Shown piece by piece: positions 21,754-31,813 of a stretch of DNA of 64,000 nucleotides. The stretch is from positions 186,001 to 250,000 of IMG/VR virus record IMGVR_UViG_3300032315_001715; one strand, written 5' to 3'. The notes under the pieces are model-generated. The model ran no database searches and was not told the DNA's origin. It worked only from the letters and a program-made list of their open reading frames with translations. Position numbers and translations under genes: made by a program. Every line of letters starts with the position of its first letter. Within the stretch, counting starts at the first letter, position 1.

Positions 21754-24700
21754 TTACACGGTTGGGCCGCTCCTATAAATCGCAGTGGCGATCTTGTCCG
21801 AGTTAGAAGTCGCTTCGTCTCGGGTCTTATCAAGGACGTAATTAGCACGTTCCAATGCCGCTATCATCATGTTCATTCGAAGCAGGCTTTCGTCGTAGTA
21901 TTTTACCGTACGATTGTTAAGCTCCTCGGTCGTTAAGATCGGAGCAACGGTCTTAACCGTTTCGGTGGTCTCATTTTTCTTAAAGGATTCATTTATCAGG
22001 GAAGATATTGAGCCAAGATATGGGTCCGGATTTTTGAATGCCACACCGGTCATGTTCTCCATTGGATTCGATGATTGGCTAAATTCAGATCTTATTGAGT
22101 CAAGGGTGTTTTCAACACTGCGAATCTGCTGAAGATCAGCAGATATACCTGCTATTGAATTGTGCATCATTCCAAATCGTTGCACCATACCGGCTATGTA
22201 TGATTCACTTTCAAAGTCAACACGGATCTTTTCTAGATCAAGCATGATTGCTGCCAATGATGTTCGAACAAGTCCAAATCCATCCAACATCTTCGTCATG
22301 TCGATTGGATCAATTCGGATCTTTTCTAGATCAAGCTTGATTGCTGCCAATGATGTTCGAACAAGTCCAAATCCATCCAACATCTTCGTCATGTCGATGT
22401 CAATTGGGTCAACACGGATCTTTTCTAGATCAAGCATGATTGCTGCTAGTGATGTTTGAATCAATCCAAATCCATCAGCAATGGTTGTTAAATAAGATTC
22501 TTTAGCGATTTCTGATGTAATGGATCGCATAGTATCCAATGATTCAACGGTTTCGTAAAACCCTTCGGCATCATTGATGACTTCTTGCCAAGCCGACGAC
22601 ATTGTTGATACCGCCTCATAAACACCCTCAGCATCGTTGATAACTTCCTGCCAACCGGCATCCATCGACATTGGTCGCACAAGTGGATTAAAATCGTTGA
22701 TAATTTCTTGCTGATCAAAATTCATTGACATGGGTCTTGCAAGGGATTCGGCACCAAACGGTGACCCAAGCAACCCACCGGGGCTTGATACTGGATTGAT
22801 TTCAGACATTAACGATCTAATCGTTTCAATTGTTGATTGTAGACGTTCTCGACTTAGATCCGAATTGAGTATTGTACCAATGTTACCAAGAAGTGTTGCC
22901 ATTTGCCTAAGTCGATCAAAACTTTGTTCCGGTATCGTCATCAGCTGTTCGGTAGTTACTGCGCTAATCTGGCGTACCAACGATGATACAACATCTATTA
23001 ACGGTTGTACCTGTCGCGTGTTAATACCTCCCCTGAATATTTGGCCAATTCGGTCAAACATGTTACCAATCGTGTTGATCCGTGCCAGGTTTGCGTCGTT
23101 AAGCAGTGTCAACAGATCTGATATCTTATCCCTAAATTGTGTGATATTGGTTGAAGATTCGTCTAACGCTAGTCCGACACTGACCAATCTATCTAGTTTT
23201 GTCGCAGGATCAACCGTTATAAGTCGACCTAACCCTTCGCTGAGGCTTTGCAATATTCCTGGATTAAATCCTTCTAGAGCGCGTTTCATGGCTTCAATGC
23301 CACGAGCAGAACCTTCTAAGTTATTGCTAGAAATTTCGCTGAGGGCAGTGATTTGCCTCGTAGTAGCGTCAACGTTAGCGGTTCGCAGTTCCCTAAAAGA
23401 ATTGACCATGTTTGAAAGCTGGGTACCAACTGACGTAACAACCTGAGATACACCAGAGAATGCCGAATCAATTGCCTTTCCAACGCTGTTCACCAGCGCA
23501 GAAACTCCTTCAAATCCAGATCTAATTCCAGTACCAAAACTCTGTGCTGCTGATCCAACACTCCGCAATAGTTCGCCTGCTCCGGATAGTCCTTGGTTGA
23601 TTGCAGTACCAAAACTCTGTGCTGCTGATCCAACACTCCGCAATAGTTCGCCTGCTCCGGATAGTCCTTGGTTGATTGCAGTACCAATACCGGTAAGAAG
23701 TGCGCCTGCCCCGGATAGTCCATCCCTGATAAAGGTTCCAATATTTCCGATAACCGACCCAAAGCTTTGAACGATTGCCGCACCACCGACAAATACTTCT
23801 CGTATCATCTTACCAAGTGGTTCAAGTGCGGGCGCGGCTAATCTCAACGCACCGGCCAATCCAATTATTGCAGCGGTTATGATCGCTATGGCAGGAGCTG
23901 CTGCAACCACCGCTGCGCTAAAGGAGGCAGCAGCTGGTACCAATGCCCTAAGCGTACCGCCAAGTCCCCGAGCCGCTGCTGCTGTTCCTGCGCCCCTGGC
24001 GGCGCCTGCGGCCGCGCCGCCACCTCCCGCCGCAGCAGCGCCACCACCACTGCTAAGACCGCCGAGCCTACCTAATCCTCGTAATGCACCAAGACCGGTT
24101 CTGACCATTAACAATCCCATAAGTGCCACGGCTGCTGTGATAACCGCAGGCGCTGCTAGTATTCCGGCAGCCATTATCGCATATCCTGTACCGGCACCTC
24201 CGCCGAACATTCCGCCAAGACCTTTAGAAAACTCGTGAATGGATCCAAAATCAGGCAACATAGCCCTAATGGCGGTGCCAAATTCTCGAACGTCTTTCAT
24301 GAAATCGCTAAATCCGCCTTGGCCCTCTTCCTTGTCTAACCACTTGAAGAAGTCATCAAATGCCGTTGTTATTCTAGTGATTATGGATTCCATATTATTT
24401 TTTAGATAATCACCGAATCTAGTTATATACGGTCCGAGTTTTTCTCTAATGGTTGTTGATGCTGTTGTTAGAGATCGTCCAAACTGTCGCAGAATCGGAG
24501 CAAGGCCTCTTGCCACATCACCTAGCAGTGCTGTTACCGTGTTGCCAATTGAACTAATTCCGGCATTAAATTCATTGAATGCTTCTTGGCTCTCGGACAA
24601 GTTTCGCCGTTGGATATCCTCGGCTTCCCGTTCTTCGGTCGTGAGCAATGCTCGGCGTGCCTGCTCTTGTCTAAACGCTTCTGATCCCTGCTGCAAACCT

Positions 24701-25989
24701 CGAACGAAATTATAAAGCTCTGGTCTTGCTGCACGCAGGGCTTTCATTTGATCTTCTGTCATGTTAGCAAAGATAGCAGACATGCGTTCAGATGCCTGTT
24801 GCGCATCTAGGTTGCCGGATCTTAATCCGGCCGTAACATCCTCGAGAGATGTTGCAAATCCGGGGACAATTGACAGCAGCGGACGCATGGATTCACTGAT
24901 CAACGCAGGTCCGCCCATGAACATGCCTTCTATCATTTCTCCTAACTGTCCGGCACCTGCGGCGCCAAAAGTAGCGTTCAACGCCGCGGTTAAACCTCGA
25001 ACACTACCGGCACCTGCCGTGCCTGCTGCGCGCTGTAGTCCATACATTCTTGTGGTTCTTAACAATTCTGCGGTTGATTTTCTTAGCTCGTCTCGATTCC
25101 TACCAGTTGCTTGGCTCAGTTGATCGAAGTTTCTCACCGTATCCATCGTTCGACCGACGATCTGTTGATCAGTAAGACCCCGTATCTCACCGCTTTGGCG
25201 CATCATTTCGATGGTTTCTAGCGATGCGGTGGTCATTTCGCCCTGCGTCATTATGAAATCAGCACCGCGCCGAGACATCTGGCTCATCTGTCCAGCCAAT
25301 CTCTGCACACGTTGAGTACCAAGAGATGCGGTAACCGCACCAAAGTTACCCATGATACGGCTAAACGCACCGAGCCCTAAGCCAGCTTGCGTAGCAGCAT
25401 CTGCAAATGAATTAAACCCTCCCTCGGCTGGCCGTATGCCCTGTGCATATAATCCACGAGACATGTCGGTGGTGGTCTTGAGTGCGTCGATCAATCCTCC
25501 GGTAACCACGGTAAGTGTTGCAAACGCGCTGGTAACTATACCGAGACCTGTACCAAAGACGGGTACATTGTTTCGTAAAACCTGGCCAAATCTACCAATT
25601 CCTGCCCCGGCATCAGTTAGCGACCTGCTGAAATCAGTTGTATCAGATTGTCCAATTTTCATACCGGCTTGCATGTTGGTGAGAATTGACTTACCTTGCT
25701 TTGCCGCCGGCGGTAATTTATCATCACGATCGCGACTGCTGCCCCGTCGGCGATATTCATTGTTGGTTTGACGCGTTTGTTGATTGGTGTTTTGTATTTC
25801 CTTGGTCAGCTTGTCGATAGCAGCTTGGTCCAACCCACCTGACTTTGCCAGCTGACCGAGCAGTCTCAAACTGATGTTGGAATTTCTAAGGATGCTTTCA
25901 AGCGTGGTTTCCTTGGCCCACCCTAGGGTGCCCAGTTGGCGCAGTGCTTGATCGTCTATGTTTGTTATGCTGGAATCTTGATCTGCCAT
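21754..25989 (-). CDS. Tape-measure-like protein (1411 aa)
   Basis: Long A/G/Q-rich helical ORF with hydrophobic segments and internal repeats; divergent from the gp26-like gene. Confidence 0.75.
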   Translation of the reverse strand: MADQDSSITNIDDQALRQLGTLGWAKETTLESILRNSNISLRLLGQLAKSGGLDQAAIDKLTKEIQNTNQQTRQTNNEYRRRGSSRDRDDKLPPAAKQGKSILTNMQAGMKIGQSDTTDFSRSLTDAGAGIGRFGQVLRNNVPVFGTGLGIVTSAFATLTVVTGGLIDALKTTTDMSRGLYAQGIRPAEGGFNSFADAATQAGLGLGAFSRIMGNFGAVTASLGTQRVQRLAGQMSQMSRRGADFIMTQGEMTTASLETIEMMRQSGEIRGLTDQQIVGRTMDTVRNFDQLSQATGRNRDELRKSTAELLRTTRMYGLQRAAGTAGAGSVRGLTAALNATFGAAGAGQLGEMIEGMFMGGPALISESMRPLLSIVPGFATSLEDVTAGLRSGNLDAQQASERMSAIFANMTEDQMKALRAARPELYNFVRGLQQGSEAFRQEQARRALLTTEEREAEDIQRRNLSESQEAFNEFNAGISSIGNTVTALLGDVARGLAPILRQFGRSLTTASTTIREKLGPYITRFGDYLKNNMESIITRITTAFDDFFKWLDKEEGQGGFSDFMKDVREFGTAIRAMLPDFGSIHEFSKGLGGMFGGGAGTGYAIMAAGILAAPAVITAAVALMGLLMVRTGLGALRGLGRLGGLSSGGGAAAAGGGGAAAGAARGAGTAAAARGLGGTLRALVPAAASFSAAVVAAAPAIAIITAAIIGLAGALRLAAPALEPLGKMIREVFVGGAAIVQSFGSVIGNIGTFIRDGLSGAGALLTGIGTAINQGLSGAGELLRSVGSAAQSFGTAINQGLSGAGELLRSVGSAAQSFGTGIRSGFEGVSALVNSVGKAIDSAFSGVSQVVTSVGTQLSNMVNSFRELRTANVDATTRQITALSEISSNNLEGSARGIEAMKRALEGFNPGILQSLSEGLGRLITVDPATKLDRLVSVGLALDESSTNITQFRDKISDLLTLLNDANLARINTIGNMFDRIGQIFRGGINTRQVQPLIDVVSSLVRQISAVTTEQLMTIPEQSFDRLRQMATLLGNIGTILNSDLSRERLQSTIETIRSLMSEINPVSSPGGLLGSPFGAESLARPMSMNFDQQEIINDFNPLVRPMSMDAGWQEVINDAEGVYEAVSTMSSAWQEVINDAEGFYETVESLDTMRSITSEIAKESYLTTIADGFGLIQTSLAAIMLDLEKIRVDPIDIDMTKMLDGFGLVRTSLAAIKLDLEKIRIDPIDMTKMLDGFGLVRTSLAAIMLDLEKIRVDFESESYIAGMVQRFGMMHNSIAGISADLQQIRSVENTLDSIRSEFSQSSNPMENMTGVAFKNPDPYLGSISSLINESFKKNETTETVKTVAPILTTEELNNRTVKYYDESLLRMNMMIAALERANYVLDKTRDEATSNSDKIATAIYRSGPTV
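22217..22474. repeat. Three near-identical 93/99-bp in-frame repeats in the tape-measure gene
   Basis: CGGATCTTTTCTAGATCAAGC recurs at 22223, 22316 and 22415 (LAAIMLDLEKIRVD.. units). Confidence 0.9.
23529..23687. repeat. Exact 75-bp tandem duplication in the tape-measure gene
   Basis: CAGTACCAA unit starts at 23529, 23604 and 23679; encodes GTAINQGLSGAGELLRSVGSAAQSF twice. Confidence 0.92.
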
Positions 25990-26029
25990 ATTTCTTACCG
26001 CATTGATGGAAATATACCCGGTTAATCCT

Positions 26030-26037
26030 GGTAAATA
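26030..26037 (+). promoter_or_regulatory. Late promoter
   Basis: GGTAAATA upstream of the gp26-like gene. Confidence 0.5.
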
Positions 26038-26067
26038 CCCATGACTTCTATTTATGGGACCAAAACC

Positions 26068-26922
26068 ATGTCATCAAATCCACTCAAGAGATACTTTCGC
26101 CAACCGTCACTGTATGTGAGACTACCAAGCCGAGGGCTTTGGTACAAGAACGGTGAGGTTAGCATGACCGAGGACAATGAAGTAGCCGTGTATCCCATGG
26201 CTGCCATCGACGACATCATGCTCAACACTCCAGATGCCATGCTCAACGGACAAGCGCTGGAAAAGGTTGTTACCAGCTGCGTGCCAGACGTGAAGAACGT
26301 CAAGCGATTAACCCTGCCGGACCTCGAAGCCATTTTTGTCGGCATCAAGTCAGCTACCAACAACGGCAAGGTCGAATACGATCGCAAGTGCCCAAGCTGC
26401 TCACACGAAAACACCTTTGATTTAAACTGCCAAGCCTTGCTTGACAACACATCCTTTGTTGACGACGGTGATCTTGCCATGAAGTTCAATGACGATCTCA
26501 TCGTGCATGTGAAGCCGTATGATTTTGAAATGCGCCAGCTGTTCATCAAGCGAGAGTTTGAGGAAGAACGCGCCATGCGTGCGTTAGAAATGTCCAATCA
26601 GGAAATGGACGACATCACCAAGGCCGCGGTGCTGGGTGAAAGCGTTGATCGTCTCAGCCACATCACCTTTGAGCTAGTAAGCCGCAGCATTGAAAAGATT
26701 GAATTGATCAAGGAAGGCGCTACAGTAACTGATCGAGCACATATCAGTGAATGGTTGATGGGTATCAGCAAGCAACAAGCCGATTTGGTCATCGAGGCGG
26801 TAAACAAGCTCAATGCCGTGGGAGTTACCAAGAAGGTGCCAGTGGTTTGCGAAAGCTGTGGTAACCAGTGGGAGGATGCGCTGAGCTTTGACCCAACAAG
26901 TTTTTTCGCCAAACGCTCCTAA
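26068..26922 (+). CDS. gp26: Baseplate hub assembly protein/tail assembly chaperone (gp26-like)
   Basis: NPLKRYFRQP.LYVRLPS.G, M...D...L.TPD...NG, CPSCSHEN, C..CG...E..L.FDPTSFF. Start could also be 26041. Confidence 0.85.
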   Translation: MSSNPLKRYFRQPSLYVRLPSRGLWYKNGEVSMTEDNEVAVYPMAAIDDIMLNTPDAMLNGQALEKVVTSCVPDVKNVKRLTLPDLEAIFVGIKSATNNGKVEYDRKCPSCSHENTFDLNCQALLDNTSFVDDGDLAMKFNDDLIVHVKPYDFEMRQLFIKREFEEERAMRALEMSNQEMDDITKAAVLGESVDRLSHITFELVSRSIEKIELIKEGATVTDRAHISEWLMGISKQQADLVIEAVNKLNAVGVTKKVPVVCESCGNQWEDALSFDPTSFFAKRS

Positions 26923-26948
26923 CCGGTGATCCAGATCTCATTGTTGAG

Positions 26949-27143
26949 ATGATCAACACGATGGAGCGCAATCGAAAGGCCATAACCAAGGATCTTTCCA
27001 CATTGGTTTTCTACATGCAGGGCGGGCTTAGTTTCGAGGACAGCCATTTGTTGTCTGCTGATCAGCGATCAGCCATGTCAAAGGTCATTGAGAAACACTA
27101 CGAAGCGGCAAGCGGCAAGAGCAACAGCAAGCTAATTGGGTGA
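26949..27143 (+). CDS. gp51-like small hub assembly protein; probably also made as the -1 frameshift extension of gp26
   Basis: YMQGGLSFEDSH.LS..QR pattern; the frame is open back through the slippery site at 26901-26907; weak RBS. Confidence 0.65.
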   Translation: MINTMERNRKAITKDLSTLVFYMQGGLSFEDSHLLSADQRSAMSKVIEKHYEAASGKSNSKLIG

Positions 27144-27620
27144 TGGGCTAACGCCCATCAGTTGTGTGTTTCTTTCGATTCGCAAGCTCATCTCTTTCAA
27201 CACACAACGCATTTATCTACGTCTGATTCTGATAGATTTGAAGCCATTCTTCTCCCCTTGCGGGGAGAGGATTGGTCCGCTTCTGATGAGTCGTCGGCCA
27301 TGCTGCAATCACCCTTGGTTCTGATCAACCAGCTGGCGGAACGCCTATTTCCAGCTTGCGGGTGCTACTCTCGGGACCATCAGTCCCACGTTCGGTTATG
27401 GATTTTCTCCAAGCCGCGAGGCTACCATGCAGGGGCAGGCCACGCGTCACGGGGGTGTTGTCACACGGATCCCGTGATCCTTTTCGCGATTTTTCTGGCG
27501 GGAGCTGTCAGCAGATCTCCCGTGGTGAGTTTGATAACCTCGCCGTTATCCTTTCACCAGGTGGCAACACCACCATGATTGGGCCAGTATGTGATCAGTA
27601 TAGTCTAGATGATATGTTGT
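27141..27620. ncRNA. Candidate large structured non-coding RNA (strand unresolved, minus favoured)
   Basis: Dense stems with no credible ORF: TGATGGGC/GCCCATCA, GTTGTGTGTT/AACACACAAC, TCTCCCC/GGGGAGA, AGCTGG/CCAGCT, GGGAC/GTCCC, TCACGGG/CCCGTGA, CGGGAG/CTCCCG, GATAAC/GTTATC, GGTG/CACC. Confidence 0.55.
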
Positions 27621-27623
27621 ATT

Positions 27624-28047
27624 TTAGATGGTGGGGAGATTTTCATGAGCCTGTATGAGTGCGTTTGTGAGCCTGGTTTTTGGTTCTAGTGAGCTTGGTT
27701 GTTTCATTAAGTGTGGACTTGTTAGGGTCCATAGAATTTGACGACGTTCGGTCGACAAACCATTGTATGTCTCATTTACGATGAGATCAAATTCTCTTCG
27801 GTAATTAAAACACAATGCAGCGTCAATGGTCGAAAATCTTGATTGGCATGATCTCGATCGTTGCTGTGGTCGTGGTATTGATTGTTTCATGGATTTTGGG
27901 AAAAATCTCAAGCTTTATAGACCTTCTATTGGTGTTTTTACATACTAGTCTTGTGAACGTCCTGAGCCAACGTTCCGTTATAACTGAGCCGAGTGCAACA
28001 GGGCAGGTTTTATACCTGCCCTGTTTTTTATCTCCGCTTTCGCTCAT
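27624..28047 (-). pseudogene. Two overlapping short ORFs (28047-27823 and 27911-27624), possibly one frame-disrupted gene
   Basis: The ORFs overlap by ~90 nt in frames offset by +1; both look protein-like, but no family was recognised. Confidence 0.3.
27997..28029 (+). terminator. 12-bp hairpin with a plus-strand T-tract
   Basis: AACAGGGCAGGT-TTTAT-ACCTGCCCTGTT followed by TTTT; sits at the stop codon of the TnpB-like gene. Confidence 0.7.
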
Positions 28048-28813
28048 TGTGATCACTCAGTGTCACGGAATATCCGCCAGTATCCTTGAAATCGATGTAC
28101 CACTTGCCGTCACCATTGATTGGATGTGGTGCTCGAATGATGGCCGATTTAAAGGTTATATCGCTGATGTCAAATCCGTTGATGCGTAACGGATCAACGG
28201 TGTATGGTATCGATACCATGCTGCTGTTGGTTTCTTGATCGAAACTAACCTTGATCAAATCGCCTGGTATTTGCAAATGGCGCTTGGTATCCAAGCTTTG
28301 GGTATGTAGAAGCTGTGTTGGTGATCGAAGTCCTTCCGTTTTCATACCGGCGTGCAAGGTATCAGCTTGGTTGATCATGTATTTCAATATTTCCAGAGCC
28401 ATCGCACGTCTCACGCTTTTATGCAATCGTGCCGGTTCGGCCGCGATCTTCATGATGGTTATCTGTGCTGGTGATATCTTCGGAGAACCATCTGGCTCTC
28501 GAATGGAGCTGGCAAAGGTCCTAAGATGTTCCGGCCATTGTTCGGTCGGATGATCCAGCAATTTTTGCGGATCAACCGCATTCTCAGCGCAGATCTCCCA
28601 GATCTTTCGTTCCTTGTCCTTGAGTCCCATGAAGACCTGTGGGAACGCTCGAAGTGGAGGAGTTAGCTTTTCGACTAACACATTAAAATAACCAAGCTCT
28701 TGGTTAATAAAATACTTCAAATGATGTTCGACATTGCGATTAACGTCTATTTCAAATGTACGTCGATTGGTAGACCGCCGCTTTGGTTGAGTTGTTTCTG
28801 GATTATTTCTCAT
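28028..28813 (-). CDS. TnpB/Cas12f-like REC+wedge protein lacking the RuvC nuclease domain (261 aa)
   Basis: RTFEIDVN....HHLKYFINQELGYFNVL resembles the TnpB N-terminus. LHKSVRRAMALEILKY resembles the REC helix. VSIPY...LRI...FKSAIIR...GKWYIDF resembles the wedge strands. The ORF ends ~19 aa later. AGGAAGG RBS before ATG 28813. Confidence 0.6.
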   Translation of the reverse strand: MRNNPETTQPKRRSTNRRTFEIDVNRNVEHHLKYFINQELGYFNVLVEKLTPPLRAFPQVFMGLKDKERKIWEICAENAVDPQKLLDHPTEQWPEHLRTFASSIREPDGSPKISPAQITIMKIAAEPARLHKSVRRAMALEILKYMINQADTLHAGMKTEGLRSPTQLLHTQSLDTKRHLQIPGDLIKVSFDQETNSSMVSIPYTVDPLRINGFDISDITFKSAIIRAPHPINGDGKWYIDFKDTGGYSVTLSDHNERKRR

Positions 28814-28834
28814 TTGCCTTCCTAACATTTTATT

Positions 28835-28864
28835 AGTGTACCTTGGCCGGTAAAAATATGTCAA
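28835..28864 (-). promoter_or_regulatory. sigma70-type promoter for the TnpB-like gene
   Basis: TTGACA-N18-TACACT on the minus strand. Confidence 0.55.
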
Positions 28865-28984
28865 CACCGGTGAAATACGCCGTTGATGCTCGATCTAGGC
28901 GATACATAGTCAAGCACATGGTATAACGGTACTTGATATCTAATACCTGGATGAAAATATTTCTTGCCACATAGGAAATTAGAC

Positions 28985-29470
28985 ATGAACAGTAAAAACA
29001 AGGGCAACAGCTTCGAACGAAAGATCGCAAATCTGTTATCGTCTCGGTTTGAATTAAAAACCGGTATCAAGAAGGCATTTCGTCGTAATGCTGACTCTGG
29101 CAGCTTTTTTGGAGGATCAAACCAAAAGAGATTGGAAACATATGATACCGAGAAGGCCAGCTTAGGCGATGTCATATGCCCGCAGACCTTTGTTTATACC
29201 GTTGAATGCAAGCATTATAAATCGGCGCCGTTGTTTAAGAACATCATGCAACAGGAATGCAAGGAATGGGACGGATGGATCAAGCAAGCCGAGCAGGACA
29301 GCCAAAACAGCGGAAAGAAAATGCTGCTCATAATCAAATACAACAATGTCGATGAGATCGTCATTGCCACTGAACCAGTTCCAAACGCCTACAATCTTCC
29401 TTACAAGACCTATTTCGTTTCATCGTTGTCATCATGCCTTGCCCAGGACGACTCGGTATTTTTTGACTGA
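28985..29470 (+). CDS. PD-(D/E)xK nuclease, Holliday-junction resolvase-like
   Basis: SKNKGNSFERKIA, GDVICP, VECKHY, W..QAEQD. Confidence 0.75.
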   Translation: MNSKNKGNSFERKIANLLSSRFELKTGIKKAFRRNADSGSFFGGSNQKRLETYDTEKASLGDVICPQTFVYTVECKHYKSAPLFKNIMQQECKEWDGWIKQAEQDSQNSGKKMLLIIKYNNVDEIVIATEPVPNAYNLPYKTYFVSSLSSCLAQDDSVFFD

Positions 29471-29472
29471 CA

Positions 29473-31251
29473 TCAGCTTGCGGCTGAATGATCAACGCTG
29501 AATGTCGTGAAGCTGTTTTCTTTGATAACGGTTAACACGGCGCCGACACGATTGATCAGTTCCTCTCGGTGGCTAATCACGAAAATGTTCTTGTTTCGTT
29601 CGCGTTCCATCTTTTTAAGTATCTCGATAGCACCCTCAAGACCCTGAGGATCCATTCCGCTGTCAAGCAGCTCGTCAACGAATATCAAATTTATAGCATG
29701 CATGGTATTTTCGAAGATGTCCCTGAATGCCCAGCTTAGTCCAAGTATCAACCGTGTGCGCTCCCCTCGAGAAAGATTGTCGAAATCCAATTCCTGTCCA
29801 TTTAAGCTGATTTCAACTGATAGATCATTGATAAACTTGATCTGATGTGGTAATCCAAGCTTGTCTAGATACTCGTTGAGACGTAGGTTTAGATATGCTA
29901 GATTTTGATCGATGATACGCTTTCGAATGAAGCTGTCCTTGTTGGTCAGCAGCTTAAACAAAAATTCTTGGTGATCTCGATCCTTAATCAGTTGGTTGAG
30001 ATCGTCGTATGTTACCTCTTGCATGGTACCGGCTAGGCTGGTATTTTGATCTCGATATGGATTAACTGATACGACCTCCTTTTCCAATTCCTTGATCAGC
30101 TGTTCCAGCGTGTTTCGATGATTTAGAGCTTGTTCCAGGGTCTGATATGCGGTCATCGGTTTGGTCATTTCATTTAACACGCGGTCTAGCTCGGCTAGCT
30201 GAGTTTTGCTAATATCGACCTCTTCTTGCTCGGCCTTGGTCTGGGTGTCAAGTTGCATGATCTTGGTTTCTAGACCAGTTCGTATCCTTTCGTGCTCCTG
30301 ATCATGGATGCCTTGTCCGCATGTTGGGCATTCGTGATTAACGGCCTTGTCGTAGTCAGTTAAGGCAGCATTGAGCTGCGTGGACATCTGCTGTAGGTGC
30401 CGACCTTTCATGGCAAGATCCCTGGTGATCTGTGACTTTGACGATACTAGTTGGTTATACAGATCCAAATCTCGATGGGATTGCAGCTCTCGCTCAATGT
30501 CAAGGGTCTCAAGGCTCTCGATGGCCTTGGCTAGCTCATCAATGGTTGACTGCCTGGTGATGTCCCAATTATCGGCCTTTCGTGCGATATCCTGCATGGT
30601 TAGTCGAATTCGATCGTTGCTTTGCTTCACGGTCCTTATTCGAAAATCCTCCTGCTCAATGGAGGTTTTAGTGATCTTGATCATCTCCTTGAGATTTTCA
30701 GCCTTTTGGCTTAACAGGGTGATGGTCAGCAGCTCCTCGATGATCTCTCGTTGCTTTGATGCACCCAGGCTGAGGAATGGTTCCGTGTAGGTATTGAGCG
30801 CAAGTATGTGCTTGAACAGAGAATGGCTCATACCGAGGATATTATCTATTTCCTTTTGGGTTTCACGGTTTTCGCCCTGTGCGTCGTCGGTGCTTTCGTC
30901 AACATTCTTGTCATCAACGATATATCGAAAGAAATTTGGCTTGCGCCCCCGTTCAATGCGATACTGATGACCGTCCTTTTCAAATTCAACGGCCACCATC
31001 ATGTTCTTTTGATTGATGTTGTTTATGAGATTATTAACCCTGATGTTGGTAAGGCTTTGCCCGTATAGGCCAAATGATATGGCCTGCAGGATGGTGCTTT
31101 TGCCGACCCCGTTTCGTGATCCGTTACCTCCCATGTCGAGATTCTCACCGAGGACCAAGCTCAATCCGGTTTTGTTAAGCTCAACGGTTTGTGTGGCGTT
31201 GCCGCAGCTTAGAAAATTTTTGATGATTACGTTTTTAATTATGAGAGCCAT
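29473..31251 (-). CDS. gp46: Recombination endonuclease ATPase subunit (gp46/SbcC/Rad50)
   Basis: Walker A GNGSRNGVGKS, zinc hook CPTCGQ, signature LSRGE, Walker B FVDELLD, ISH. Confidence 0.95.
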   Translation of the reverse strand: MALIIKNVIIKNFLSCGNATQTVELNKTGLSLVLGENLDMGGNGSRNGVGKSTILQAISFGLYGQSLTNIRVNNLINNINQKNMMVAVEFEKDGHQYRIERGRKPNFFRYIVDDKNVDESTDDAQGENRETQKEIDNILGMSHSLFKHILALNTYTEPFLSLGASKQREIIEELLTITLLSQKAENLKEMIKITKTSIEQEDFRIRTVKQSNDRIRLTMQDIARKADNWDITRQSTIDELAKAIESLETLDIERELQSHRDLDLYNQLVSSKSQITRDLAMKGRHLQQMSTQLNAALTDYDKAVNHECPTCGQGIHDQEHERIRTGLETKIMQLDTQTKAEQEEVDISKTQLAELDRVLNEMTKPMTAYQTLEQALNHRNTLEQLIKELEKEVVSVNPYRDQNTSLAGTMQEVTYDDLNQLIKDRDHQEFLFKLLTNKDSFIRKRIIDQNLAYLNLRLNEYLDKLGLPHQIKFINDLSVEISLNGQELDFDNLSRGERTRLILGLSWAFRDIFENTMHAINLIFVDELLDSGMDPQGLEGAIEILKKMERERNKNIFVISHREELINRVGAVLTVIKENSFTTFSVDHSAAS

Positions 31252-31813
31252 TGTAATACCTCATCAGATTGTCCTTCCATGGAAGCATTCTAAGGTTTTC
31301 TATCGACGATGCTTCCTCTACGGTCATACCTCTAGCAAAGCATTCCTTGATTGAGATAATATGATCGAGTTGCCATCCACCTTCTACACCACAAAGGGTT
31401 CGCGGGTGTCGATTAGGATTGATCCTATCGATGTTTGCTTCATAAATCCGTTGACTCGCACCATGGACATTACGTAGGTATCTCTTCCAGGTCGACATGT
31501 TTAGATTTCGTTTTCTGGGCGCTTTTCTTGTCAACCAACTTTTTCGAGTCAAGGCCTGGCATCGATGAGAACAGAATCGTTTCTTAACCGATGGAACGGT
31601 GACAAATGAATTGTTACATCCTTCTGCAACACACGTCCTTGCTTCTCGTTTAATCCGTTTAGGTACCGCTTTGCCGGGTTTAGCACCTATTGACATCTTG
31701 ATTCCAAGTTTTTTGCGCCATCGCCATATTGTAATTGGATGAACTTCTAATTTTACGGCAACTTCTCTTGCCGTCATAGAAATATCCCACAAGCACGGAT
31801 CGGGTATCAACAT
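31235..31813 (-). mobile_element. HNH homing endonuclease (HTH + Zn ribbon + HNH) between gp47 and gp46
   Basis: HTH (TAREVAVKLEVHPITIWRW), C..EGC...FCS..C, WQLDHIISI...NLRMLPW.DN. Confidence 0.75.

Follow-up and report, generated by a model that had tools for sequence, protein, structure and literature searches.

A short protein family of T4-like jumbo phages with a predicted TnpB-like REC lobe, encoded beside a PDDEXK_15 nuclease gene and a large structured RNA

Results

Organization of the locus

The window analyzed here is a stretch of 64,000 nucleotides (nt), positions 186,001 to 250,000 of IMG/VR record IMGVR_UViG_3300032315_001715, on a T4-like jumbo phage contig of 452,799 bp. Its minus strand carries a gene for a 261-amino-acid (aa) protein whose predicted structure resembles the REC lobe of TnpB and Cas12f and which stops where the RuvC domain of those proteins would start. 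Past its stop codon lie a hairpin, a second open reading frame (ORF95) and a structured RNA of about 460 nt (Table 1). A small ORF and a gene for a gp26-like baseplate hub converge on the 261-aa gene from the left; on its right are a divergent PDDEXK_15 nuclease gene and then Rad50-like and Mre11-like genes. This gene order is kept in relatives, whose loci are designated here by labels such as L001 and L008. Megablast and tblastn searches against 50,697 deposited phage records left the window without any match; it thus has no cultured relative.

Table 1. Features of the locus, in coordinates of the 64,000-nt window.
Feature	Position	Strand	Remarks
261-aa gene	28028..28813	-	predicted TnpB/Cas12f-like REC lobe only; without RuvC, without zinc finger
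Ribosome-binding site (RBS) AGGAAGG	28817..28823 (28823->28817)	-	3 nt before the ATG
Sigma70-like promoter TTGACA-N18-TACACT	28835..28864	-	footprint kept in relatives
Hairpin, 12 bp	27997..28025	T-run on +	directly past the stop codon of the 261-aa gene; conserved
Putative ORF95/RNA promoter TTGGCT-N17-TAGTAT	27942..27970	-	read from the sequence; overlaps a GGCTCA repeat
ORF95, 95 aa	27624..27911	-	predicted basic disordered N-terminus and three-helix bundle
Structured RNA, ~460 nt	27132-27603	- (same as 261-aa gene)	many helices; invariant GNRA hairpin UCCCCGCAAGGGGA
gp26-like baseplate hub	26041-26922	+	PF12322
Small ORF, 64 aa			converges on the 261-aa gene from the left, with the hub gene
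PDDEXK_15 nuclease gene	28985..29470	+	divergent from the 261-aa gene; PF24608, PHROG 244 'RusA-like resolvase'

The open frame spans positions 28028..28867 on the minus strand and would yield 279 aa from a GTG codon; initiation at an in-frame ATG (28813), just downstream from the RBS, gives the 261-aa product. A scan of the upstream region identified the two promoter hexamers (28864->28859 and 28840->28835). Single sites resembling TTGACA-N18-TACACT are not above chance (4 found versus 3.7 expected). In the aligned upstream regions of L008, L009, L010, L019, L021, L001 and L004, from relatives with about 50-70% protein identity, both hexamers and their spacing are conserved, unlike the flanks. 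Since the surrounding bases vary, we take the site to be a real promoter, apparently of the sigma70 (early) type.

An earlier, sequence-only reading of this stretch had singled out the 261-aa frame with its RBS and promoter and placed it in the phage core, between baseplate and recombination genes. The gene proved real, and both the promoter footprint and the position turned out to be conserved in relatives. The same reading had seen no tnpA gene or insertion sequence (IS) ends, and indeed none were found at the locus when a transposase and IS ends were looked for around the gene, which is single-copy and occupies a fixed syntenic position. The gene is not part of a transposon: the features that define IS200/IS605 elements (TnpA, ends, mobility, patchy multi-copy spread) are missing.

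The protein family is natively short

A word-indexed search returned 12 homologues of 238-268 aa with 41-100% identity. When 1.84 billion cluster representatives were searched exhaustively with phmmer, 142 clusters were retrieved at E<=1e-3, nearly all of 240-345 aa. No long member bearing a RuvC domain occurs among them, and about 345 aa is the upper limit for real members; two matches of 1156 and 1614 aa were rejected as artefacts, being pilin-like or repeat proteins. Ratios of nonsynonymous to synonymous substitution (dN/dS) were 0.05 for the L008/L009 pair and 0.14 for L010/L019, with dS about 1.3. The gene thus belongs to a previously unnamed, natively short family under purifying selection.

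The predicted fold matches the REC lobe of TnpB

An AlphaFold2 model built from the 12-sequence alignment (predicted local distance difference test score, pLDDT, 87.2; predicted template-modelling score, pTM, 0.83) contains a strand at residues 19-23, a helical domain at residues 26-158 and six strands within residues 179-243, flanked by basic disordered tails. In the model, these elements form a seven-stranded WED barrel whose first strand is followed by the inserted, helical REC domain; the last predicted strand comprises residues 238-243, and the protein ends 18 aa later. The published structure of ISDra2 TnpB shows a seven-stranded WED barrel of the oligonucleotide-binding (OB) type, made of residues 1-12 and 117-176, a four-helix REC domain (residues 13-116) between strands beta1 and beta2, and RuvC from residue 185 (PMC10097598). 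As modelled, the topology of the 261-aa protein equals that of the published TnpB WED/REC part, and the chain stops where RuvC would start.

A Foldseek comparison with 350,542 PDB chains gave a concordant picture. The top 21 matches were all Cas12f, TnpB (ISDra2, ISFba1), Cas12k/m/n/o/p/lambda or TranC chains, with probabilities of 0.84-1.0 in the top 13 and a best E-value of 7.5e-4; more TnpB and Fanzor2 chains appeared further down the list. The template-modelling (TM) score was 0.59 when normalised to 8ex9_A, a 166-residue chain of ISDra2 TnpB that contains WED and REC only. Searching BFVD returned two members of the family itself, followed by giant-virus 'transposases' and TnpB-like or Fanzor proteins. 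The model lacks RuvC (the RNase H fold with its D-E-D triad), and PF01385 and PF07282 gave no match. Nor was a zinc finger (TNB) found: conserved CxxC pairs are missing from both alignments inspected, and OrfB_Zn_ribbon gave no match. The Pfam OrfB_IS605 signatures (PF12323/PF01385) were not detected in any of 82 family members.

The sequence-only reading had aligned the protein by eye with TnpB and Cas12f WED and REC elements, ending before RuvC, and had proposed a Foldseek or HHpred comparison as a check. The AlphaFold2 topology and Foldseek agree with the likeness and with the early stop, and the homologues share the truncation throughout; profile comparisons did not produce a significant link. 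The best local alignment found by hhalign falls in the same N-terminal stretch as the alignment made by eye: it is co-linear and covers strand 1 and the first REC helix, and it pairs the family's near-invariant Asn44 with Asn33, invariant across eight TnpBs, but it is not significant. The likeness to TnpB is therefore backed by structure, as predicted by a model, and not by sequence statistics.

In one distant relative (L046:2253-2651), a gene of the RNase HI type (PF00075) shares 23 nt with the 3' end of the family gene. The RNase H fold is also that of RuvC. The overlap is probably a coincidence, the gene encoding a replication RNase H.

A conserved structured RNA lies downstream

The RNA, which is GC-rich, occupies the interval 425-896 nt past the stop codon of the 261-aa gene. 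The closest relatives have some 870 nt at this place, comprising the hairpin, ORF95 and the RNA. Conservation of the RNA is strikingly high: between the window and L008, 94% of core positions agree, although the 261-aa gene is just 66% identical at the DNA level and has saturated synonymous sites. In a consensus structure of ten full-length copies computed with RNAalifold, 45 of the 102 pairs show compensatory double changes. Copies in 19 distinct loci were recovered with a covariance model built on a core of 146 nt. Across the core alignment, 93.7% of the cells are paired and double changes affect 18/28 pairs; not one of 500 shuffles reached any of these measures, and slid partners paired in just 39-53% of cases. 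The strand is indicated by the excess of G-U over A-C pairs (72 to 21) and by the invariant GNRA loop UCCCCGCAAGGGGA, correct on the strand of the 261-aa gene only. Segments outside the helices are highly conserved as well. By these comparisons, conservation goes far beyond neutral expectation, unpaired parts included, as in the cores of ribonucleoproteins (RNPs) or ribozymes. Recent horizontal transfer as the cause of the high identity was rejected because the flanking ORF95 and the 261-aa gene diverge normally and the RNA tracks the phage phylogeny. The structured region that the sequence-only reading had noticed 400-900 nt downstream is thus a genuine same-strand RNA supported by covariation.

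Rfam 15 gave no match at E<=1 in the interval 26000-30000 and, at E<=10, nothing but trivial hairpin matches in 27100-27650; ARAGORN reported neither a tRNA nor a tmRNA. To our knowledge, the RNA shows no convincing resemblance to RNase P, tmRNA, group I or group II introns or the 11-nt tetraloop receptor, with which it was compared by eye. A full-text search of the literature retrieved no description of the RNA, and compared with the families in Rfam 15 its class is new. No obvious variable, guide-like segment was seen in it, and comparing its segments with the rest of the 64-kb window, which is 14% of the genome, gave matches at chance level, whether as exact k-mers or with up to 3 mismatches. 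One pattern match to a Mycoavidus genome and four to metagenomes were dismissed as chance.

Protein and RNA are usually linked but can be separated

All RNA copies occupy the same syntenic slot. More than 15 lineages have it immediately 3' of the family gene and in the same orientation, down to a protein identity of 23% (L049). ORF95 does not intervene in L006, L049, L065 and L067, where the RNA begins within about 50-90 nt of the stop codon. In L044 (= L056; L044:6854-7697), whose protein is 29% identical, an 83-aa ORF95 homologue comes after the family gene. The AT-rich gap of 730 nt behind it gives a weak, full-length match (15.7 bits) to the RNA core model, on the strand and at the position where an RNA would be expected; this gap probably holds a strongly diverged RNA copy.

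Two clades depart from the common arrangement. One (L001, L004, L023 and L029) keeps a conserved protein and has no RNA, the next gene beginning within 36 nt. The downstream non-coding region is thus kept by homologues in the lineages just counted and missing from this clade. The other clade (L085, L086, L088, L090, L092 and identical copies), found in a scan with a degenerate pattern, has the RNA without the protein. Here, the order is Mre11-Rad50-PDDEXK_15-ORF95-RNA, all co-directional and with no family gene at the locus (L085:7792-9207 and L086:4691-6115; also L088, L090, L092, L094 and L105). These contigs, up to 518 kb long, gave no match in the motif scans by which the family was detected at other loci.

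On a Rad50 tree, the protein-only and the RNA-only loci each form a single nested clade, pointing to an ancestral arrangement of nuclease, protein, ORF95 and RNA. Since that state, ORF95 and the RNA would have been lost once together, and the protein once. As the protein and the RNA each persist alone, they are not obligate partners; the two natural 'knock-outs' show that the protein has a function independent of the RNA, and the RNA one independent of the protein. Being separable in this manner, the pair leaves RNA-guided action unproven.

ORF95 and the interval between gene and RNA

Compensatory changes in the stem of the hairpin that follows the 261-aa gene occur in relatives. Its T-run being on the plus strand, the hairpin would be an intrinsic terminator for antisense (+) transcripts, not for the mRNA of the 261-aa gene; it should stop transcripts that run antisense into this gene. 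ORF95 was judged to be coding because many of its changes are synonymous, at third positions. The model of the protein (pLDDT 80.5) retrieved only generic three-helix matches in a fold search. ORF95 is found solely together with the RNA, except at L054, where the locus breaks off short of the RNA position.

The hexamer GGCTCA occurs four times on the minus strand between 27646 and 27990, as against 22 times on both strands of the whole 64 kb. The copies form two pairs, each at exactly 22-nt spacing, and a variant, AAGCTCA, lies another 22 nt on. One pair is in the ORF95 leader and overlaps the -35-like TTGGCT; the other lies in the last part of ORF95, close to the 5' side of the RNA and partly within conserved codons (RL., QAH). 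The repeats may serve as a promoter motif or as a site of protein binding.

A nearly constant neighbour: the PDDEXK_15 nuclease gene

The sequence-only reading had also pointed to a divergent resolvase-like nuclease. This gene, assigned to PF24608 with 88.5 bits (cutoff 27; E 6.1e-25), lies immediately upstream of the family gene in nearly all lineages (about 27/30), mostly in divergent and sometimes in co-directional orientation. The adjacency holds for members with 23-30% identity whose neighbours are otherwise different, and where 2-3 kb of other genes part PDDEXK_15 from Rad50. The literature searched holds no pairing of the PDDEXK_15 family with a TnpB-like REC-lobe protein. From the gene neighbourhood, we hypothesize that the nuclease could supply cutting in trans.

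Genes resembling GIY-YIG/NUMOD homing endonucleases were observed at L027:3024-4052, L050:2692-3786 and L054:3340-3906, and also at L045:4866-5687 and L010:178-918. They repeatedly lie on or beside the site of PDDEXK_15, and at three loci they take its place; this junction seems to be a favoured target of homing-endonuclease invasion.

Other features of the window and of related loci

The Rad50-like and Mre11-like genes are separated by an inserted ORF of 192 aa (31235-31813, minus strand). This ORF has an N-terminal helix-turn-helix and HNH-endonuclease-like PHROG matches, is missing from this place in L001 and L004, and probably encodes a free-standing homing endonuclease. Divergent from the gp26-like gene is a 1411-aa ORF (21754-25989, minus strand) with Ala/Gly-rich stretches and several internal near-repeats, for example ...GLSGAGELLRSVGSAAQSFGT... 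and ...DGFGLVRTSLAAI.LDLEKIR.... Its counterparts in relatives vary widely in size (782-1437 aa), and its likely product is a tail protein of the tape-measure or hub type. Precomputed annotation reports weak intein matches (PF14890) in a T4-type portal gene (L001:12356-12798) and in a 597-aa gene (L006:645-2438).

Discussion

We favour, with a probability of roughly 0.6, the reading that the 261-aa gene is a functional early gene of a short family with the fold of a TnpB/Cas12f REC lobe, and that its product is a non-cutting recognition module working with its neighbours. The gene is inherited vertically within a conserved block composed of Mre11, Rad50, PDDEXK_15, the 261-aa gene, in many cases ORF95 and the RNA, the small ORF and the gp26-like hub. 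Early in infection, the protein may bind DNA, RNA or both through its WED-REC cleft without cutting, in partnership above all with the PDDEXK_15 nuclease encoded beside it and, in the majority of lineages, perhaps with the RNA and ORF95. Beside the observed gene, its short length, the resemblance in fold, the structure of the RNA and the neighbourhood statistics, it is binding, partnership and guidance that we infer. In TnpB, the WED-REC cleft reads the duplex of the transposon-adjacent motif (TAM) and lines part of the heteroduplex channel, and the omegaRNA scaffold is held by WED and RuvC (PMC10097598). For a REC lobe on its own, DNA binding is therefore no less plausible than RNA binding.

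Several observations weigh against this reading. The evidence for the fold is one predicted model, in which the query-normalised TM scores are merely 0.36-0.41 and the root-mean-square deviations large, a result that we attribute to the orientation of the domains relative to each other. Scans of the protein and 82 family members against Pfam and PHROGs, and of the protein and three relatives against NCBIfam and PADLOC, gave no match; phmmer and profile searches against PDB sequences did not retrieve TnpB, the weak matches to RPRD1B and Cmr6 being judged chance. Comparing the 82-member family profile with eight diverse phage TnpBs by hhalign was not significant (P 0.27), nor was the comparison with Escherichia coli InsQ alone (a homologue search seeded with InsQ gave near-identical E. 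coli copies only and was of no use for profile building). As for the partners, the protein occurs without the RNA in one clade and the RNA without the protein in another; RuvC, part of what holds the omegaRNA scaffold in TnpB, is missing; PDDEXK_15 persists without the family gene in one clade and gives way to a GIY-YIG/NUMOD gene at three loci. The neighbourhood as a whole could be plain inherited synteny of a conserved phage core.

How the protein would work with its neighbours can be drawn in several ways. Among these specific readings we rank highest, though below even odds, that it provides recognition for the PDDEXK_15 nuclease or for the recombination module. We regard as rather unlikely an RNP in which the WED-REC protein binds the ~460-nt RNA, together with ORF95, as TnpB binds omegaRNA, its target being recognised and left uncut or else cut in trans by PDDEXK_15. 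Such a particle would fit the REC-lobe fold, the position of the RNA 3' on the same strand (the arrangement of omegaRNA and of TldR guide RNAs) in so many and such distant lineages, the ancestral co-occurrence of protein and RNA, and a conservation of the RNA beyond neutral that extends to unpaired segments. It is at odds with the 36 nt found in place of the RNA in the L001/L004/L023/L029 clade and with the retention of ORF95 and RNA, with no family gene at the locus, in the L085/L086/L088/L090/L092 clade; moreover, no guide-like segment and no above-chance match in the 64-kb window came to light, and the domain that in TnpB holds much of the omegaRNA scaffold is absent. The fullest version, a split, RuvC-less RNP for RNA-dependent targeting that derives from TnpB, made of REC lobe, ORF95 and RNA, with the PD-(D/E)xK nuclease replacing RuvC in trans, and forming part of the recombination module of T4-like jumbo phages, strikes us as quite improbable.

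Two further explanations dispense with such cooperation. The protein might be an ordinary phage DNA-binding protein, an accessory of early transcription or of replication and recombination, with a convergent or ancient likeness to TnpB and with unrelated neighbours kept by synteny. The missing sequence-profile link to TnpB, the broad conservation of gene order in these phages, the independent loss of each neighbour and the early sigma70-type promoter would all agree with this, as would the nature of WED as an OB fold, a common nucleic-acid-binding scaffold (PMC10097598). We nonetheless hold it unlikely: Foldseek searches of PDB and BFVD return essentially Cas12, TnpB and Fanzor proteins and no other OB-fold proteins, REC is inserted between strands 1 and 2 as in TnpB, and the best hhalign alignment, non-significant as it is, is co-linear and places Asn44 on Asn33. 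To the view that the gene is what remains of a mobile TnpB from an IS200/IS605 element, truncated or in decay, we give hardly any credence. The likeness to the N-terminal half of TnpB is the sole point in its favour, and it is excluded by homologues that are all equally short and by the dN/dS values of 0.05-0.14; position and promoter are conserved, and with tnpA and IS ends lacking, what follows downstream is ORF95 and not a remnant of RuvC.

A widespread family under purifying selection and consisting of the REC lobe only would mean that the lobe is capable of evolving and working independently, and would provide a natural scaffold of minimal size (about 260 aa) with which to recognise DNA or RNA. 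The RNA is of interest independently, as a large new structured class that has rRNA-like conservation in jumbo phages and its own small protein partner. Should protein, RNA and PD-(D/E)xK nuclease cooperate, they would make up a new architecture for RNA-dependent targeting; should they not, the locus still adds one RNA class and one protein family, the latter of recognisable fold, to those known.

Comparison with known systems helps to place these elements. With ISDra2 TnpB and Cas12f, the top Foldseek matches, the 261-aa protein shares the predicted WED OB barrel and the REC domain between strands 1 and 2, and most lineages also have a structured RNA encoded directly after the gene, on its strand. 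It differs from them by the absence of RuvC, the TNB zinc finger and the C-terminal domain (261 aa versus 350-550 aa), of OrfB_IS605 signatures and of any transposon, being instead a vertically inherited core gene. Because RuvC, zinc finger and profile signatures are all lacking, we do not file it as a member of TnpB; on the predicted structure, we file it as a stand-alone TnpB-like REC lobe, a new variant beside that family. Full-text searching found no paper on such a RuvC-lacking family in phages, and all characterised TnpB/Cas12 derivatives in the literature searched, nuclease-dead ones included, keep the RuvC fold.

Exaptation of TnpB is well documented (PMC10691335). TldR, the sigma-associated TnpB proteins, Cas12k and Cas12m are domesticated, immobile and non-cutting, and the 261-aa protein, too, may bind rather than cleave. 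Those derivatives retain an inactivated RuvC and depend on a guide RNA; the 261-aa protein is without the nuclease lobe. Of the hallmarks of TldR (a retained but inactive RuvC, an RNA with a short guide, promoter targets), RuvC is absent here and neither guide nor targets were found in the window; the clade that lacks the RNA also argues against a strict RNA dependence, unlike that of TldR-type derivatives. The ~460-nt RNA, for its part, differs from omegaRNA in being conserved throughout, in having no detected guide and in its ability to occur without the protein. It shares with GOLLD, ROOL and HEARO/IscB omegaRNA the character of a large, multi-helix, conserved and phage-encoded RNA, HEARO-type RNAs also lying beside a small effector gene; what sets it apart from GOLLD, ROOL and HEARO is the lack of an Rfam match and its setting between recombination and baseplate genes, usually after the basic ORF95.

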